A DNA stretch of 63,608 nt, the filler included, from Reticulomyxa filosa (lineage: Eukaryota; Protista; Foraminifera), in assembly GCA_000512085.1 (NCBI GenBank). It is 15 parts of 15 records of this genome, joined end to end, with 100 filler letters (N's around TTAATTAATTAA, not from the genome) between each part and the next. Parts side by side here need not be neighbours in the genome. Positions count along the whole stretch, not along the records: positions 27,895 to 38,902 come from ASPP01010176.1; 14 more parts are not named here. One strand, 5' to 3'. This document shows, one piece after another, positions 27,895-39,278 of this stretch. Below the pieces are notes generated by a model. The model saw only the letters and a program-made list of their open reading frames with translations, ran no database searches and had not been told where the DNA came from. A program made the position numbers and the translations under genes. Within the stretch, counting starts at the first letter, position 1. The number at the start of each line of letters is the position of its first letter.

Positions 27895-28991
27895 AATGAT
27901 AATGATAATGATAACAACAATGGCAAAGGAGGCAAGACCAGGAGCCAACTCGGTAGTGTGAAACTAGTGGCATCATTGTCGCTCTGGTGTAATATACTGC
28001 TGTTGATCGTAAAGGCCATTGTTTTTGGGTTGTCTTTATCCTTGTCAGTGCTGGCTTCTTTAATCGACAGTGTCTTGGACTTATTGACACAGGCAGTATT
28101 ATATTGGACAGAAAGGCAAGTGTCGCGAGTTTCCGAAAAATATCCAGTCGTTAAGTGATCAAAGTATATAAAAGTCGGGGAGAGGAGAAAAAAAAAAAAA
28201 AGCCAAAGGGGAATACGTTTTACATTAAAAAAAAAAAATGATTAACCTTTTAATTATGTCTATTTTTCCTCCCCTCCCATCGGACTTATGATAATGATTT
28301 CATTCAGGGCAGAACTCGATTGGAACCAGTGTCGATAATGGGTGTGAGTATGCTAATGATAATGTCGGCAGTGGTGGTGATTCGCGAGTCGATAGCCGTA
28401 CTGATAGCAAAGGAATATGATATTGTGTTTGAACTCGATCTGGTGCTAATGCTGTGTGCAATCATTTTAATCAAGTTTTTATTGTGGTTGTACTGTCGAC
28501 AGTTTCGTTATTCACCAATTGCGCACGCTTTGGCGGAAGATCATATGAACGATGTATGCAGTAATGGCGCAGCTGTTATTGCGGTGGCCATTGCTTCGCG
28601 GGTACCTTCATTAGGGTTTATGGATGCTGTGGGTGGCATTGTCATCTCCATATACATCATCATTCGTTGGTATCAAATTGGCAGCACCGAAATTAAAAAG
28701 TTGATTGGCAGAAGTGCCGACGACTCGAGTATACAAGAGATTCGAATGTGCTGCGAAACCCACTCCAGCGACATGAGCGTTGATGTCGTGCGAGCTTACC
28801 ATATTGGCCGTAATATCTTGGTAGAAGTGGAGGTTGTCATGGACAGACACAAAACTTTAGAATATGTCCATGATGTAAGCTTGGAACTGCAGAAAAAAGT
28901 CGAACAGTTCCCATATGTAGAAAGAGCATTTGTTCATGTTGATTATACGAAACGAGATTACGACGAACACAAAAAACCAACATTAGGATAA
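27895..28991 (+). CDS. Cation diffusion facilitator, Mn-CDF/MTP8-like (5'-truncated); intron 28150-28307
   Basis: ASLIDSVLDLL and EDHMNDV (DxxxD in TM2 and TM5, Mn-CDF type), KYPV|GRTRLEP, DVVRAYH, VERAFVHVDY. Confidence 0.92.
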
Positions 28992-29443
28992 GTGAATTTA
29001 ACGTTTGCACATCTTTCATATCTTCTTTCGATTTTTTTTCTTAAAGATAAGATATAAATTATTTTGATAAATAAACCATCAGCAACAGTCTATCATCACT
29101 CATTAATCCTTTGACACTTGTAATATCGGTGATTGTATCAGAAATTGTCCTCGTTTTCAATTTCTTTATTGTAAAAAGAAATGAAGATCTTTTCTCTCAA
29201 TACAATTTTTTATCTGTTGCCCTTGTAATCAACAAAATTAACATAAATACTCTTCATACCACAATGACAAAAAAAAAAAGAAATAATAAGATATTACAAA
29301 TGCTCCACTATTGTAGAATAACATATTTTCGATTTTTCCAGTTTTGGAAAACGAGTACTTGCAAAATTGTTTTTGAAAGAGGTCACGCTTTTTTTTGGAG
29401 GGGAAGAAAACCCCCAAATCCTATTGAACAACAGCGTTTGATA

Positions 29444-32400
29444 ATGCTGACTATTCAAACGAAGAAACATTTCACATGGATTTGCCGAATGTGCACTTTT
29501 GCAAATGAGAAAAGATATGATCGATGTGAAGTCTGTAGTGCCCCAAGTCCTCTTTCAAACGAACAAATATGGGTTTGCGAGACCTGGTACTGTTTTTACA
29601 CGTGTTGTGTTTTAAGTCCTTCTTGTAAACATGAGCTGGAAAAGGGAGGGAAAAGAAACTTGTACACACAAACATACAAACGAATGAATAATATAAAATC
29701 AACAATGAGTCCATTGCCACCCAATAAATATAACAATAACAAACAAAGCACATCAGTCAACGCCATGACTAGAGACGAATGGTAATTATTTGTATAAGCA
29801 ACATTTATGTATTTGTTTCCCTCTTTTTAAAAAAATCAAAATTAAATATTCCGATACCCATCTTCCTTCCCTAACTTTAAAAAAAAAAAGATATATATTA
29901 TTTGTATTTGTATTTCGGGGGGGTATGTGTGGGGTAAAAAAAGTCGAACCTGTACCGCGCCTTCACCAATTCCGGAGAGTAAAATGAAATTCAATGCAAT
30001 GACCATCATATGCCATGCTTGCAAACACAAAAACCCAATTCCAAGCAAACATTGCCGAGTATAATTTTTTTTTGTTTTTTGGTTCAAAATAGATGAGTAC
30101 ACTATAACATTACATAAATTTTTTTTTTTTGTTTTGTTTTGTTATTATTATTTTATCAAAAATAATAAAGTCTTGCTTTGCAACCTTACACCCTAATTTA
30201 AAACCTTACATTGGAGATATTGTTACGTTATTTCTTCTTCTTGTTTTTTTTTTTGTTTATTTCATATGCTTTGTTTGCTTGTGTGTTTTTACCAAAAAAA
30301 AAAAAAATTTAAAATAAAATAAATGTATACGTACATACGTATAATGACTGGATGGAATTGTATAATGTTTTAAACACAGGTGGAGTTGAAAGATAAAAGA
30401 CAAGGGAAAATAATTACAATAGGCCCTCGAGTTGAATGTGAGGGAATGTTCGTCCAAGTGATATTCAGCAAAAGCAGCGCTAACAAGAGCAACACAATCG
30501 ATATGTTGTGGACCCCACTTAAAACTGTTGACAAAATCCTTCAATGTAATCAGAGAGAAAAGGCTTCATTGATGTAGTTTTTTTTATTTGCTTTTTTTGA
30601 AATATTCTGCTTATACGAACACATATGTTTACATATCATCATATAATTACCTTTTTTTTTTTTGTGTTACATATACATACATGTATACATATCACCGGTT
30701 GCAATCGCATCACAGCAAATAATGAGTTCAAACATACAATTGGAGACCGGATTCAAGTGAAAGATATTGATTGCTTGGGAACAATTCAATTCGTTGGCAA
30801 CACTCGATTTGATACGGTTTGAATTATGTTTTCGTGCGCCCTCCATTTTTATTTCCCTTTTGCTTTTTCTTCCTTTTTTTTTTTACAACTTAAAAAGTGT
30901 ACTCTGCTTGTTTGTTTTGAAATTGATTACATCTGTACATATATACACAAATACATATATGTATATGTAATGTAATCCATACAAAAATTGAATGGACGTA
31001 TATTACAAACCGAACGGGGGGGGGGAAAAAAAAACGAAAAGGGAGTATTGTATGGGATTGAATTGGATCATGCAAAAGGTTGGAACAATGGAACTGTAAA
31101 TCAACAATTTTATTTTCACTGTGAAAATAACCGTGGTACATTTGCTCGACCCATCGACATCAGTTTTGTACAATGAAAAAATTTTTCTTACTCTCCACCT
31201 TGCCCTATCAGTCAATTATAAGAAGGAGGGAAAAAAAAGGGGATGATATGTGTGGGCGAGGTTATCAAATGTATACATATACGTATATCCACCTAAATAA
31301 TTAGTGTGTAAAATGCTCATATTACGCATGTAATAGCAATAAACTATGTATAATATATAAACATATATGTATATGCATATATAAAAGTAATAACGAACAA
31401 GAAAAGCGCAATGGCAGTGGCCTCTCCAGATCTGTTGTTATCGGCAGTAGCATTGTTACCACCAGCCTCTTCAGCGTCGTCAGCACATACGGAGAACACA
31501 AGTTCATCTCCAGTGGCGAGTATAATCTACGAAGAAGAAGAGGACATTCAGATGAATGGGGGAAAAGCAACCTCTTTGATACGTGGCGGTAGGAGTGGCA
31601 ATGATAGGAATGGCAAGAGAGTAGAGGAGCAGGACAATGGCAACAACAACAATAACAACAACAACAACAACGAAGATGACGAGGAAGACAACAGAAGTAA
31701 CGTGATGCCAGCCAGTCACAGCAGAAATAAAAGTAAAAGCAAAAGTGACACATCACCAATGATAATGACAAGACGAAACACGGAAACGAAAGTGCCGTCG
31801 TCGTTGCCTCCGCCCTCGCCCACCTCGTCGATCCATTCATCGCCTTCCACGCCGACGAACAAAGTGCTGTGGGTAGCGAGTCCATCTGCCGCCGCGAATG
31901 CCGAAGATGACAGCGACGAGGACAAAAGTCCTTCCTCGAGCAAGTTTGAGGAAATATGGCTCGACGCAAAAGACATTGACGGCATCGAGTCTTCCATACA
32001 ACGTGCCAAACAACAGCACGCCAAGTCACTGTCGCAATCGCATTCGCGTTCGCATTCACAGTTGCAAGCACTGCAATCTCAATCTCAATCTCAATCTCAA
32101 TCTCAATCTCAGCTGTTGTCCAAAACCACTTCTCGGCCACCACTGCCTTCCACCCTTTCCTTTGCTCTACCTAAACGAAAAACAAAAGGCAAAGACAAAG
32201 ATAAAGATAAAGAAAAGGATAAAGACAAAGACAAAAACAAAGACAAAGAAGAGGAAGGGCACGAAGAAGCAGAAATGTGGAGCGATACAGAAATCACGAA
32301 GCAACAACAAGATGAAAACGATCTTTCAGAAAAAACTATTAAAAATAGAAGTGCCAGTAGTGAAAGTGCTTTGCGAGTATTCGTCGGAGATACTGTTTGG

Positions 32401-35400
32401 TTTTTCTTTTGAGAAAAGAGGAAAAAAATTATTATTGTTCCATTGTGATGGTAAATACAAGTAATACATTTTTAAACTCCCCTCCCATTTGTGTTTCTTA
32501 AAGATACGATTAAAGTCGAAAAGAAAAGCCACAGTGACGTGCATTGGACCCAAGCCTGGACGTACAGGAATATGGGTCCGAATCCTGATTGGTAAAGTCA
32601 AGAAGGGACAAGAGGATCTGACTCAACAACCGTTTTGGGTTTCCATTGATCGTATTGACAAAATTATTCAATGTAAGAAAAAAATAAGAGAAGGGAAGAA
32701 GGAGGGGATAGGGGCTCATCAGTTTTTTTTTTTTTTTTTTTTGGATTGTTTGAAAAGTGAAACGAAAAACACAAGGTCAATGCACTCTACAAGAAAAGTA
32801 CATAACGTGCAAAAAAAAAAAAAAAAAAAGCCAAACCAAAAGCCAAGTTTACCGTGGGTGACCGTGTCGTAATTCCACAATGTGAATGTGCGGGTGTGAT
32901 TCGATACTTTGGACCTATCCAAGTGGACACTGGCGTTTGGTATGGCGTGGAGTTAGACGAACCCAAGGGCAAAAACAATGGCACGCTAAATCATAAACCG
33001 TATTTCCGATGTGGTGAAAATCACGGGGTGTTTGTCAAGACAAAGCGTGTAGGTATGATCGCTATACATATTATATATGTACATATACATATATATATAT
33101 ATATATGTCAAATAATGTATATACATAAATATATGAATATATTTGATATAACCAAAAAAAAAAAATTTTAAAAGTCCAAGAGATACCAATGGCAAATCCT
33201 GGAGCAGTTTTGGACAAAACTGAGCAAAGCTCGGATGACAATGCAGTCGTTGAAGCCAACAAGCAGGTGTCACGGAATCCGTCGCCGGAACCACCTTTTC
33301 CTTTGAAAGAGAAAAACCCCTATGAGGGGATGCTCTTGCTTTGCGAGAGTAATTCCATTACCACTAATGGCAATACCGAAAACACGAATAACCCTGACAC
33401 AAATAATAATAATAATAATAATAACAACGAGGAGGACAAGCCTGTTCGACCTGACAAAATCCAAACCATCACACTGTCCGGATTACATCGTGACTTGTAC
33501 GAGTGCGCTCTGCCCACTATCACCAATGCAGACAAGGACGGCAAAGAACACGTGTTCCGAGAGAAATTGAGATTGGCATGCACCATTTGCGATTTTCAAA
33601 ATATGGTTTGACTTAGAAGAGGGAAGAGGGAAAGAGGAGGAGGTTCTTTTATAATAGCAATGATAATAATTTGTACGTATACATATGTATACGCACAATG
33701 TATACGTTAGCTGCATGTTTGTATTTTGCAGCATTGCAAATAAAAACGAGAACCGTATACCAAAAAAAAAAAAAAAATAAACATATGTATATAAAAGTCA
33801 CGTGTACGACTCAAGCTAATTCAAAAGAAGGAGGAGATGTTGAACGAGTTAGTGGAATTTATCGGTACGTATCACTGGTATACCGACGAAACATTCGAGG
33901 CATGTTTGCAAATGTTGGCATGTAACTTATTCCGTCCTGTATCGTATCCGAAGCTGCTGCCCTCGATGATGAATGAAGTGAAAACGACGATTTCGAAAAG
34001 CAAGGATTCTGCAAAAGATCAAAGTGAGTCTGGCGTGGACGGTTTAAAGTCATTGGAGTCGACAACAACAGCGATAACAACAACAACAACAACAACAACA
34101 GCAATTAATGGTACAGTACATCACATCAATCCAAAAAGCGGTATGTTTGAAGACCCGGCGTGGATACATATAAAACTAGTGTACGAGATTTTGTGGCGAG
34201 TGATCCACACAAAAGATATTCCGTCGGTGACAATGGGGAAATATTTGTGCGGTTCGTTTATCGAGAATTTGGTGGAGTTGTTTGCGTCCGAGGATTGTCG
34301 CGAGAGACATTATCTGACCATGATCCTGCATAAGTTGTACGGATCCTGCAAAAACCTGCGCGCAAGGATATTGGACGTAATGTTCAAATTTTTGTATCGA
34401 GTTATTTATGTGAACGGCAGTGCTTGCAATGGCATCAGTGAGATATTGCATTTGCTATGTTCGATTATTCCAGGATTAAACTTGCCAATGAAAGATATCT
34501 GGCATCGCTTCCTTCAGTGCATCGTGATGCCGTTGCATAAAAATCGACAATTGCGACAGTTTTGGGAGCCGCTGCTGCAATGCTGTGTCAACTTTGTGTC
34601 GCAAGATATACACACGGCTTTGGTAATATTGCAAGGCTTTGTTAAATATTGGCCCAAACAATGTGTCGTGAAACAAGAGATTTTTATGAACGAAATCGTC
34701 AATGTTGTCAGCGTCCTTATGTCGCATTCGAATCTCAATTCATTAGATTGGTCCAAGTGCAGACTGTTGTTGCTGGAGTGCACCAACAAAATCTCGCAGT
34801 GCATCCTGTGCATGCGCACCGTGCTCGTCGAACGTGCCATGGCTGCGTGGAAAGAGCCGTGCATGCAGCAATTGATAGACCTCGACCGTTCTCTATTTTT
34901 GCCGCCATTGATCGAAGTATTGTTTCAATACAGAAATCGTGTTGATTCCTATACTCTTATGAATATGCACAAATATGGATCGCAGCGACGAAATTCTGCC
35001 TTGAATTCTTCTTCTAGTAATGTGTCCACCAAGATCAATATCACTACCACTTTTACAGGTTCTGGCAATACTGGTGCTAATGCTAATGCTAATGCTAACG
35101 CTAATGCCAATGGCGGTGATCCCAACTCCGAAAGCTACAACGCAAGCAAGAGTATGAAAGCCAATGACTTGCTGTGCAATACCTTGGAGAAAATATATCA
35201 CACGAAAGATCAAGTCTATTATGATCGAATGCAAGTTTATTTAAGCAAAAAGTATCAACGCGAAACTCAAGTTAATGAGGTGATGCTCGGACTTTATCAA
35301 CAGAGCGCTGCCGATACAACGGCAAGTACAGTAGAACCGACCACGAACACTAATGCTGTCAACGCTGTCGACAGTTTCACTTTCTATTTGATGGACAAAA

Positions 35401-35782
35401 ATACTGAATGCGATTACTCTAACATTGTTGATAGCATACAAGAGTGCGCTAAACAAGGCGCTTACCTGACATTGATGGAACAAAAAGTTTTGCTTCCTTT
35501 TTTTTTTTAATATGCTTTACTCCAAAAAAAAAACTTGGTCAATGAAGTTAACTCATTCCCATTTTGTTTTTATTAAATTTGTCATGTGTTTAGATTATCC
35601 GACATGTGAAATGGAAAATGATTCGACAAATGGCAGATAAAAAAAAAAATGTTGCTACCAATGTGAAACGTGCTGAAAGTGCGGTCTCTTTCACCGTGGA
35701 CACAGACCAGATCAGTGAAATAAGTAGTATCGAAAATTATCACAGAAATGAGCTCACGAATCGGCTAACCGACACAGTGTAA
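29444..35782 (+). CDS. Fusion protein: 3 RanBP2-type Zn fingers, 2x(degenerate CAP-Gly-like + CAP-Gly), and a PP2A B56 (B') regulatory domain; about 13 exons
   Basis: Zn fingers WICRMCTFAN..RCEVC, WVCETCTSVN, ICHACKHKN..HCRSC. CAP-Gly LYGIELDHAKGWNNGTV..YF and WYGVELDEPKGKNNGTL..YF.C..NHGVFV. B56 FREKLRLAC..CDF, NLFRP, DPAWIHIKLVYE, FASEDCRER..LHKLYG, PLHK, KYWPK. In-frame GT-AG junctions link the domains. Confidence 0.82.
32074..32110 (+). repeat. (CAATCT)n hexamer repeat encoding QS repeats
   Basis: Direct. Confidence 0.85.
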
Positions 35783-36566
35783 GAGGAAAAGGGGGGAATC
35801 AATGGATACCAACAAAAATACACAAGAATGCCTTTTCGAATGGTTTTCATGTCAGTTATTTTTTGTTGAAATTAACTTTTTTTTACTTGTTTTCTTTTTT
35901 TTTTTCTTTTTTTTTTTTTTCCAGCCTTTTGTTTGAAATCTTTTATATTTGGCTGATTGGGAGCTTTTCTCTTGTTTCTTTTTCTTCCTTTTTTTTTCCC
36001 TTTCACTTGTTGTACATTATGGCTTCAAAAAATTGTGGGTTAAAATTCTTTTTTGGTCTAGATATGGGGTTTTTCAGGGCGGGAAACATAGAAAAATTGG
36101 AATTTTAATTTTGTCTTGATGTTTTTTTGTGTGACTGTATTTCACTTCACCAGAACCTTTGGTTTTCATCCATTCTCTTTCAATTTTCCTCTCTCGGTTT
36201 CTTTTTTTTGTGTGTGTTTTTCCCTTTGTGGTTTATGACTTATGAAGGTAAAAAATTTTTTTAAAAGATAGTGGGCTTACTTTTCTTTTGTGATTTGTAG
36301 AAACTGTCTTTTTAAATGTTTGTGCTCCATTAGAATTTCAAAATATTTCCCCGTTAAAATATTGGTGGACCATCGGGGTTTGTTTTACGAGAAAATTATT
36401 GCTTTTTATTAGCTCTGTATTTTTTTTTCTGATTTTCATATTACAAAGTCTTCATAAATATTGAAGATTTTTGATAACAAAGCTTTTTTGAAGTTGCGTA
36501 ATCATACGCTCACTGAAAAAAATTTAAAACCACAATTTTATCACTTATTAAAAAATACAGCAAATG

Positions 36567-38574
36567 TTAATGCTCATCATCTCTTTGCACCATACATCCC
36601 AGTTTTTGCTCTGCCAAACGCATGACAATTTTAAAATCGCTTTGCAATTTTTGAGATGAATAAATAGAATTGCTCGCGCTAGCAATGTAAGCCACAATGC
36701 AAGATGTACCCATATAAACCGCGTGGTTACCACCAAACAACTCAATTCCCATAATAAAACTCGACAATGGTGTATTTGTGGCCGCACCGAACACCGCAAC
36801 GAAACCTATCGCTGCAAAAACGTTTGTTAAGTCTTTCGGCACAAACAGCGTCTCGGTCAAGGTATTGCCTGTTTTTTTTGTACACTAAAAGTTAAAAATA
36901 CGTACCAGAATCAGACGACCTTGTTCTGAGGTGTGCCATAGTACATAAAAAGCGAACAAAAATTGCAGAAACAAACCTAGAGTGGCTCCGATGTAGAACA
37001 ATGGTGTGACTTCTCCTCCCTTAAATCCACTTGTCAATGTAACCACAGTAAATATCAGTTTGAGTAGCCATGAAGCTGGCTTTGATCCTCCAGAATTAAA
37101 AGCAGTAACAATGGTAACTACCTCAGGGTGACCAGGAGGTTGGATCGTGCCGATCCCCAAGTAATTGGTGTTGTCAAACATGTAACGCATTATAATGATC
37201 ATAGTCCCACCAACAACAGGGTGAAATATGTGATATTTCGGATTGGGAATCAGCCACTTGAAAAAGCGACCACAGTTATGCATGCCCCAAGCAAACAACG
37301 ATGCAGTCAAGCCAAAGAAAATCGAAGCGATCACAACCTTCAGCATAAACACCCAATCGAAATCCAAGTGGTCCGAATAGCTCATATGCCCAAAGCACTG
37401 ATCCATGCGAAAGCAAGGCGTATCATACTCAGTGTGACTACTCGACAGCAAATCCAAAAACAATCGACCAAACCAATCTGCCGTCAGACCTGTTCATAAC
37501 GTATAATTGCAAACATTTGAAGAGTACCCCCCCAAAAAAAAAACTACGTATATAATAATTATTTCATGCACTGGTCCCTTCTTTTTTTTTTTTTTTTGTC
37601 TTGCATGACTATTTAAAAAAAAAAACCCCACTTCCAATAAGAGCAGGGCCAATAGTATCCAGTCCAATGGCGCCAGCAACTAATACTTCCACTGCGAAAG
37701 TGGTAGCGGCAATAGGCGTGCCAAAGATTCCCCCAAAGCCAGCGGCAATGCCCGAAACGAACAAAGTGCGTGTGTCTTCTTGGCCAAAATGAATATGTAA
37801 GTATTCTCGCAATATCCTGGCATAAGTGCTCATCAGCGAGACAGCCATTTGTATTGCCGTACCTTCTCTGCCTGCACTCCCGCCAAACAAATGTGTCGTC
37901 CACGTCGTCAACAAAATTAACGGCGCCATTCGACTCGGAACACTGCCACGATTTTTGTTTTTATTTCTCGGCTGGTAAATCTCATCCAAGATCAAATTGT
38001 TACCACTTCTGGTTTCGCGACCAAATGTTCGGTAGGACAATGCAATACATACCCCACCCACTGGCAATAAAAATAATAGCCAAGGATAATCAAAGCGCAA
38101 ATGCGTAAGCTTGTTTAATCCCCATAAAAATATTGCACAGGCAATGCCTATTATTGCTGCAATTGGCATTATTACCACGCACCATAAACATACATGTGCC
38201 ACAATAATCACACGGTCTCGTGTTGCTAGGTAAAGTCTTTTAAATAATTTTTGTAGTGCTGGCAATATATCGGCAAACTTAGGTCCCGGTGGGGGCTCGC
38301 TTGCCGGGGGAACCTCCGCTGGTTTCTCATTTGCTTGCACTGACACGTCACCATCACTTGCCAGCTCCACTGTGGGATTTGGGTTCTCGTCAATCGTTTC
38401 GTTCAAACTTTCGTTCTCGTTCTGCGTCATTGCTGCTATTGTTGCGTTCACTTCCGTCGAGAAATGGAAGCGAGTGTACGATGTAGGATTAGTGTCATTC
38501 TCTGTTGTGTTATCATTCTCTGTATCCAGTAACAGAGGTGCCGCCAAGGAGGTGGCCTTGCCCTTATAAGACAT
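36567..38574 (-). CDS. CLC-family transporter of the CLC-F (fluoride/H+ antiporter, EriC-F-like) type; exons 38574-37632, 37489-36977, 36868-36567; 585 aa
   Basis: GNNLIL (~38004-37987), GGSAGREGTA (~37872), GFKGGEVTP (37016-37002), GATLG|NTL, ATNTPL, ELFG, SIYSSQ. No CBS domains. Exons total 1758 nt, in frame. Confidence 0.9.
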
Positions 38575-39278
38575 TGATATTTGCTGATTATTTATCTACT
38601 CTGTTCGGTGGGAAATTTCTCAAATATAGTTTTTACAAGCCCAAGCAACAATCAAAAAAACATAACCTCTTTTCTTATTTCACAAGATTTAAACAATTTT
38701 ATAAAATAATTAAATATGATATTTTCTATGAAAAATGCATAAAATAAGATGCGGTGGATCTTAAAAAAAGATTCAGTTCAGATTTTTTATTGTTTTTCTG
38801 TGATCTTTGCACATTTAATGTCTCAAATAAAAATTTATGTTCTTTGAGATTTAGTATGTTTGTAGGGTAAAGCCCTATTATACAAGTTCAAATAAAGGAA
38901 CTNNNNNNNNNNNNNNNNNNNNNNNNNNNNNNNNNNNNNNNNNNNNTTAATTAATTAANNNNNNNNNNNNNNNNNNNNNNNNNNNNNNNNNNNNNNNNNN
39001 NNAAAAAAAAAGAAAAAACAATACATTCAATTCGTTATTTTGGAAAAATAAAAACAAGAAAGAAATAACATTTTATGTTCATATTTGTAATGTGTGATTT
39101 CTTTTTTTTTTTTCTCTCTAAACTTTTGAAAATCTTTTTCTCCCCCTTTGTAAAAAAAAATTTTTTTGATTTACGGTTTACTTGCAATGAGTGACAAGGA
39201 GAAGGAGAGATTGTTTGCCCCCTTTTTTTTTTTTGTTTGTGTTAAACAAATCTTTTTTTTGTTGAATGTTTAAAACAG

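Follow-up and report, generated by a model that had tools for sequence, protein, structure and literature searches.

Fluoride export is divided in the literature between bacteria, to which CLC-F and Fluc are assigned, and eukaryotes, to which FEX is assigned (2025 Nature Communications paper, PMC12808221). The CLC-F family is split into N-T and M-V subclades (Brammer et al., PMC4113899), and its diagnostic signatures are GNNLI or GMGLI, GREGT or GREGV, and GEVTP (2024 review, PMC11139923). N-T proteins such as CLC-pst of Pirellula staleyi comprise a CLC core of ~420 residues with no CBS domains, and have relatives in Planctomycetota, Verrucomicrobiota and Bacteroidota, while the M-V subclade includes CLC-F-eca of Enterococcus casseliflavus (PDB entries 6D0J, 6D0K and 6D0N). 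A preprint covering about 10,000 CLCs places CLC-F as prokaryotic, with eukaryotic sequences forming two main clades and a few sequences near YfeO (bioRxiv 10.1101/2025.07.07.663545). Canonical eukaryotic CLCs (CLC-1 to CLC-7, AtCLC-a to AtCLC-g, cmCLC) carry a C-terminal CBS pair and the motifs GSGIP, G(K/R)EGP (GKEGP) and GxFxP; the plant protein AtCLC-f is a coincidence of name and not a CLC-F. Here we describe a three-exon gene of the N-T CLC-F type from the foraminiferan Reticulomyxa filosa. It lies at positions 36567-38574 of the window, the whole 63,608-nucleotide stretch analysed, which joins 15 parts of assembly GCA_000512085.1.

The gene occupies the minus strand, as do all features of it given below, and runs from an ATG at 38574 to a TAA at 36569-36567. 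Exon 1 (37632-38574; 943 nt, 314 whole codons and one base) encodes an N-terminal extension, GNNLI and GREGT. Exon 2 (36977-37489, 513 nt) contains GEVTP, and exon 3 (36567-36868, 302 nt) encodes the last helices and a conserved IY tyrosine, together with a short tail and the TAA. The sum, 943 + 513 + 302 = 1758 nt, corresponds to 585 codons and a stop. Both introns are in phase 1 and of the GT...AG form: intron 1 (37490-37631) has 142 nt, GTGGGG...AACAG, with 30% GC, and intron 2 (36869-36976) has 108 nt, GTTTGT...AACAG, with 34% GC. Reading on without splicing reaches a stop within 7 or 31 codons of entering either intron.

Searches of the window gene were made exon by exon. The exons matched the Pfam Voltage_CLC model (346 positions) colinearly, at positions 1-131 for exon 1 (E 2.9e-24), 153-276 for exon 2 (E 1.8e-18) and 292-345 for exon 3 (E 8.2e-9), with a tail of ~35 residues after the last match. 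Voltage_CLC was the only Pfam domain found in the three exon translations, with no CBS and no other domain. The intron 1 junction, PALIG-S-LTADWFGR, aligned without gaps to the intron-less homologue PSLVASITADWFGR, and the intron 2 junction, YIGATLG-NTL, aligned without gaps to the intron-less homologue FIGACTGNVI. The locus was confirmed as a real nuclear gene with three exons, separated by two introns of spliceosomal type.

An exhaustive HMMER search with exon 1 returned a single near-identical protein, GenBank ETO23144.1 (P0001 hereafter), labelled 'Chloride channel core, partial [Reticulomyxa filosa]'. Identity to this product was 310/311 residues for exon 1, 170/170 for exon 2 and 99/99 aligned residues for exon 3. 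The gene is already deposited, under a generic name only and without recognition as a CLC-F. For whole-protein steps P0001 was used as a stand-in, with both artefacts of its gene model (described below) included.

All three diagnostic CLC-F motifs are present in the Reticulomyxa protein, letter-perfect and of the N-T type. GNNLI (37990-38004) replaces the GSGIP of chloride CLCs, and its N is the N of the N-T subclade. GREGT (37858-37872) holds the gating glutamate, whose counterpart in CLC-F-eca is E118, and the G-R-E-G-T columns were invariant across homologue alignments A1-A3. GEVTP (37002-37016) corresponds to E318, V319 and T320, which bind fluoride in CLC-F-eca. Conservation thus extends to the equivalents of E118, E318 and T320, whereas CLC-F-eca has M79 and V (GMGLI, GREGV) where the Reticulomyxa protein has N and T. 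The superfamily fold is common to the canonical eukaryotic CLCs, but their CBS pair, GSGIP, G(K/R)EGP and GxFxP are all absent.

Searches against PDB sequences and structures gave the same placement. At default thresholds each exon matched only the CLC-F entries 6D0J, 6D0K and 6D0N (E 7.4e-24, 3e-12 and 4e-6), and no CLC-ec1 or eukaryotic CLC entry was found at E 0.001 or better with any exon. In NCBIfam, weak sub-threshold matches to ClcA and ClcB were obtained, and no CLC-F-specific model was matched. An AlphaFold2 model of residues 128-623 of P0001, built from a 70-row alignment, had a mean predicted local distance difference test (pLDDT) score of 90.1 and a predicted template modelling (pTM) score of 0.89. 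Six CLC-F chains headed the Foldseek results (target template modelling (TM) score 0.88-0.91, root-mean-square deviation (rmsd) 2.7-3.0 Å, identity 29-30%), and the predicted fold superposed on CLC-F-eca. CLC-ec1 gave TM 0.65-0.74, rmsd 6-8 Å and identity 16-18%. Assignment of the protein to the CLC-F type is supported by its motifs, exon-wise PDB matches, fold and position in the trees described below. The initial annotation, made from the DNA alone, had proposed a CLC-F-type protein of 585 residues without CBS domains, interrupted by two phase-1 GT-AG introns and carrying GNNLI, GREGT and GEVTP in place of the chloride motifs, and every element of that description was recovered at the locus.

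Two features distinguish the protein from bacterial CLC-Fs. The N-terminal extension (38218-38574) of ~119 residues is low-complexity and acidic, and is absent from bacterial CLC-Fs, whose homologous sequence, in alignments A1 and A3, begins near query residue 117-130. The loop RNKNKNRGS (37942-37968), which joins GNNLI to GREGT, is 6 residues longer than in bacteria. The two motifs are therefore 44 residues apart; in 172 database proteins and 77 genome loci the distance is 38. Relative to the bacterial N-T CLC-Fs, with which it shares the motifs and ~43-49% core identity, the Reticulomyxa gene further differs in its eukaryotic host, its two introns and its lack of both a riboswitch and a DUF190 fusion. 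As a side observation, many bacterial N-T CLC-Fs carry a C-terminal DUF190 domain (PF02641, 'PII-like'; P0153, P0157, P0169, P0222, P0223, P0237 and others) and a few carry CBS domains (P0039, P0067). Neither domain was found in the eukaryote-like sequences examined from the clade described below.

The closest relatives of the Reticulomyxa protein are eukaryote-linked sequences and not bacterial ones. The nearest bacterial proteins, all of the N-T type, are ~43-49% identical over the core; they are spread over Planctomycetota, Verrucomicrobiota, Bacteroidota, Alphaproteobacteria, Chloroflexota and further groups. P0003 is a complete 541-residue open reading frame (ORF) from the EukProt transcriptome of the centrohelid Pterocystis sp., with 48-53% identity. 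P0002 is encoded on a 12.9-kb contig of 59% GC that also carries an adjacent MCM3 orthologue (E 4e-199 against human MCM3) and a Myb-domain gene, and P0128 adjoins an ArfGAP gene (E 6e-26). A metagenome contig of 42% GC, L088, bears two tandem CLC-F-like copies at 117-1924, and similar sequence occurs on L089 and L090. Copy 1 changes frame between colinear segments, and copy 2 breaks off at a GTAAAG donor, after which comes a (CTCCT)n microsatellite; both are accordingly intron-bearing. The lengthened loop between GNNLI and GREGT is common to the Reticulomyxa protein, P0002, P0003 and P0027, and N-terminal extensions also occur in other members of the eukaryote-like clade.

Named eukaryotes were rare in these searches. 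Among 1.8 and 5.8 billion proteins, only Reticulomyxa and Pterocystis were found, and when a profile built from the eukaryote-like clade was used in a second, word-indexed search, the matches were bacteria and the eukaryote-linked rows already known, with no further named eukaryotes. The genomic neighbourhoods of P0004, P0040, P0146 and P0148 were uninformative, and the domain hints on the P0047 contig were weak and sub-threshold. Some details of these relatives stand apart from the argument. The P0002 gene (L001:3912-5462, Logan SRR15116022) is uninterrupted, with motifs GNNLI, GREGT and GELTP; the MCM3 orthologue (L001:6212-8833) lies 750 bp downstream, and an MFS transporter gene is nearby. 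Its source is a compact, GC-rich, intron-poor eukaryote. P0027 is a gene-caller chimera in which the end of L088 copy 1 is fused to the beginning of copy 2. It is sister to the Reticulomyxa protein, and may derive from a related rhizarian.

Maximum-likelihood trees of 101 and 59 rows were rooted on E. coli ClcA and ClcB, an outgroup lying ~9-10 substitutions per site from all CLC-F rows. The Reticulomyxa query was nested among N-T CLC-Fs in both. Long 'eukaryote-like' sequences formed one clade, with 12/12 members in the 101-row tree and 14/14 in the 59-row tree, and Shimodaira-Hasegawa-like approximate likelihood ratio test (SH-aLRT) values of 97 and 100, respectively. Within it, Reticulomyxa, Pterocystis, P0002 and P0004 (plus P0027) fell together in an inner group, with SH-aLRT values of 97-98. 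The same monophyly appeared in an interim LG+F+G4 IQ-TREE topology, without support values. The clade sits among bacterial N-T CLC-Fs, with no resolved sister or donor phylum. Phylogenetic placement had been proposed from the outset as a check, and by SH-aLRT support the protein, represented by P0001, falls inside CLC-F, apart from the ClcA/ClcB outgroup.

The simplest reading of these sequences is that one old transfer from a bacterium to a eukaryote was followed by spread or loss among protists. Any transfer would predate Reticulomyxa, since its nearest relatives are eukaryote-linked and it lies within a 14-member clade. The introns were probably gained later, because those of Reticulomyxa and of L088 are at different positions and the P0002 and P0128 genes have no interruption. 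The clade would thus descend from bacterial N-T CLC-Fs and would later have gained the N-terminal extension, the 6-residue loop and, in the Reticulomyxa lineage, the introns; we infer both the direction and the timing of the transfer. The initial annotation had called the gene horizontally acquired and intronised. This appears right in kind, although the acquisition was neither recent nor private to Reticulomyxa, which shares it with the rest of the 14-member eukaryote-linked clade.

Taken together, the locus is in all likelihood a nuclear three-exon N-T CLC-F gene, encoding what is probably a fluoride/proton antiporter, in a eukaryote-borne clade of bacterial N-T descent. By analogy with characterised bacterial CLC-Fs, the protein would act as a homodimeric 1:1 fluoride/proton antiporter. 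The GREGT glutamate would serve as the swinging gate and proton carrier, alternately occupying the external anion site. The glutamate and threonine of GEVTP, with the asparagine of GNNLI, would form the fluoride sites, the glutamate and threonine contacting the central and external fluoride ions. The corresponding roles of E118, E318 and T320, and the fluoride binding of V319, have been described for CLC-F-eca (PMC10962343). A proton gradient would drive fluoride from the cytosol, either out through the plasma membrane or into a compartment that is acidic; with an acidic-vacuole gradient, it would be sequestered and not exported. We infer from this analogy the fluoride selectivity, proton coupling and membrane location of the Reticulomyxa protein, and a role in fluoride resistance. 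FEX presumably plays the same part in eukaryotes, clearing cytosolic fluoride, but it is a passive two-domain channel of the Fluc type, unrelated in fold and mechanism to a proton-coupled CLC antiporter. Some protists probably possess a fluoride-export route other than the FEX channel, as the Reticulomyxa gene belongs to a clade present in other eukaryotes.

Several observations count against this assignment and must be set beside it. In the trees the M-V type was represented by a single, partial CLC-F and eukaryotic CBS-type CLCs were absent, and branch support came from SH-aLRT only. Both splice junctions are predicted from homology and expression in Reticulomyxa is presumed, and the GenBank model differs from ours at the 5′ end and in the structure of intron 1. 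Across the eukaryotic clade, fluoride transport and resistance are likewise predicted from homology, and N-T CLC-Fs are the less fluoride-selective subclade (PMC4113899). In a pairwise HMMER alignment, Y396 of CLC-F-eca, the tyrosine by which that protein coordinates its central fluoride, stands opposite an Asn. A second branch of the eukaryote-like clade (P0010, P0040, P0128, P0031, P0047, P0146) has altered motifs: GNNLI is replaced by GVNLV, GVDLI, GFDII or NMDLL, and GEVTP by GEVTC, GEVTS or GEVTN. Ala/Pro-rich loop insertions of 40-50 residues occur as well in P0047 and P0146.

With regard to the gene model, the intron 2 junction is the same in the GenBank and three-exon versions. At the 5′ end, the GenBank model adds, in the region 38575-38760, an upstream exon of 30 residues that has no start codon and is a translated AT-rich leader. 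It also splits intron 1 with a 31-nt mini-exon, mostly a poly-A run, encoding the 11 residues GTKKKKKEGTS. No aligned homologue, eukaryotic or bacterial, has counterpart residues to this mini-exon, and it was the only stretch of the AlphaFold2 model with pLDDT <50. The single 142-nt intron 1 is the better model for these two reasons. The two-part intron 1 and the start-less 5′ exon were rejected, the mini-exon having no homologue counterpart and low pLDDT, and the analysis corrects the GenBank gene model at this locus.

The altered motifs and the modest selectivity of the subclade bear on a different possibility, that the protein is a CLC-F homologue re-purposed to carry another anion, such as chloride or nitrate, or to act as an uncoupled endomembrane channel, with a role other than fluoride resistance. 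In the N-T subclade, CLC-pst shows only ~3-fold rate selectivity for fluoride over chloride and binds fluoride weakly (PMC4113899). A loop insertion of its own and long N-terminal extensions mark the eukaryotic clade, the selectivity motifs are changed in sister lineages, and the position of Eca Y396 is not Tyr in the pairwise alignment. A nearly invariant Tyr (IY; Y593 of P0001) lies 3 residues downstream, opposite Eca Y399, and the review literature notes poor alignment around Y396. A substrate shift is conceivable, given the lower selectivity of the N-T subclade and the altered motifs of sister sequences. In the second branch, the changes may reflect a shift in substrate or regulation, and function may have drifted within the clade, as several members have altered motifs.

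For the Reticulomyxa protein itself, a substrate shift is less likely because its motifs are perfect. GNNLI, GREGT and GEVTP are intact, including the fluoride-contacting E and T, and characterised bacterial proteins with these three motifs all export fluoride (PMC11139923). That the motifs have stayed unchanged through a long stay in eukaryotes argues that selection still acts on the same chemistry. We consider re-purposing unlikely, though worth keeping in view, and a fluoride/proton antiporter the better account of the Reticulomyxa protein.

Ancient vertical inheritance, in place of horizontal transfer, would account for a single, internally deep-branching clade that takes in at least the rhizarian Reticulomyxa and the centrohelid Pterocystis, and for which no bacterial donor phylum is resolved. 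Against it stand the mere two named eukaryotes among 1.8 and 5.8 billion proteins, and the position of the clade in the outgroup-rooted trees, among bacterial N-T CLC-Fs and not sister to all CLC-Fs. The large CLC phylogeny also has only two main clades of eukaryotic CLCs, both in other parts of the family (bioRxiv 10.1101/2025.07.07.663545). It is more economical to suppose one early transfer, after which the gene spread from eukaryote to eukaryote or was lost, and vertical descent is accordingly judged quite improbable beside transfer from a bacterium.

A silent or decaying gene would fit the result of one search, in which RNA runs were sought for 36567-38574 and none were listed. The spliced frame of 585 codons is nonetheless intact, the nearly invariant positions of the family are all kept, the fold is predicted with high confidence, and the Pterocystis orthologue is transcribed. 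The chance that the Reticulomyxa locus is a pseudogene is very small, and a working antiporter gene remains the preferred interpretation.

The surroundings of the gene are those of a eukaryotic nuclear genome. The piece of the window at 27895-38902 contains no N and also encodes, on the plus strand, the large exon of a PP2A B56 regulatory-subunit gene (33837-35510; PF01603, E 7.7e-60), in which the GC content of third codon positions (GC3) is 0.49. A CAP-Gly domain coding sequence (32854-33060, plus strand; PF01302, E 3.8e-24) and a fragment of a cation-diffusion-facilitator (CDF) gene lie on the same piece. The CLC exons have GC 0.42-0.46 and GC3 0.42-0.48, and the neighbouring genes GC3 0.45-0.50; relative synonymous codon usage of the CLC exons correlates with that of the neighbours (r 0.72). 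The flanks of the gene have 26-28% GC, beside the 30% and 34% of its introns. No Rfam family, the fluoride riboswitch included, was found at gathering score anywhere in 27895-38902, as would be expected of a eukaryotic gene. In bacteria, a fluoride riboswitch lies upstream of only ~30% of CLC-Fs and is not strictly defining.

Bacterial contamination, or an assembly chimera joining a CLC-F gene to Reticulomyxa DNA, might be suspected from the fragmented assembly (the contig is 11 kb) and from the bacterial origin of the nearest named homologues beyond the two protists, but it is very unlikely, and the least credible explanation of all, given the nuclear context on a contig without N, two AT-rich GT-AG interruptions that must be removed before homologues align, exon GC, GC3 and codon usage equal to the values in the neighbouring B56, CAP-Gly and CDF genes, AT-rich flanks, a best bacterial identity of only about 45-49%, the lack of a riboswitch or other Rfam match, and the existence of independent eukaryote-linked relatives. 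That the gap-free contig shared with B56 speaks against contamination had been argued at the start, and the absence of N, the B56 and CAP-Gly neighbours and the matching GC3 bear this out.

Elsewhere on the same piece, three plus-strand ORFs are arranged head to tail across 32854-35510: the CAP-Gly ORF (32854-33171), a B56-like N-terminal ORF (33189-33611) and the B56 ORF (33837-35510). They are separated by AT-rich gaps, and could represent one CAP-Gly-B56 fusion gene or two genes. Upstream of these, an ORF at 31411-32412 (plus strand, 333 residues) had no Pfam match. It contains poly-N, SQSQ and DKDK runs, with EIEI on the opposite strand, and resembles typical low-complexity protist coding sequence or microsatellite sequence.

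With regard to novelty, no description of a eukaryotic CLC-F was found in the published literature, in a search that was thin on subscription journals. The novelty claimed in the initial annotation holds to that extent, although the gene itself was already in GenBank. What is new is the host domain and the distinct eukaryotic clade; the family and the mechanism are already known. As these are known and the function is predicted, the practical impact would be modest. We regard the finding as solid, testable and moderately surprising, with a mechanism that is presumably conventional.

An intron-bearing nuclear CLC-F with perfect motifs would, if true, break the division between CLC-F and Fluc in bacteria and FEX in eukaryotes. 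It raises the questions of which membrane and which proton gradient are used, whether the protein co-exists with FEX or replaces it, and by what route the gene spread among protists. It is quite possible, though we stop short of calling it probable, that an unrecognised eukaryote-borne CLC-F clade, found in Foraminifera, centrohelids and metagenomic eukaryotes, provides a second, proton-coupled and FEX-independent route of fluoride export or sequestration, one that may use acidic endomembranes and may replace FEX. The Reticulomyxa gene would offer a directly testable example of an anion/proton exchanger of bacterial type at work in the membranes of a eukaryote.

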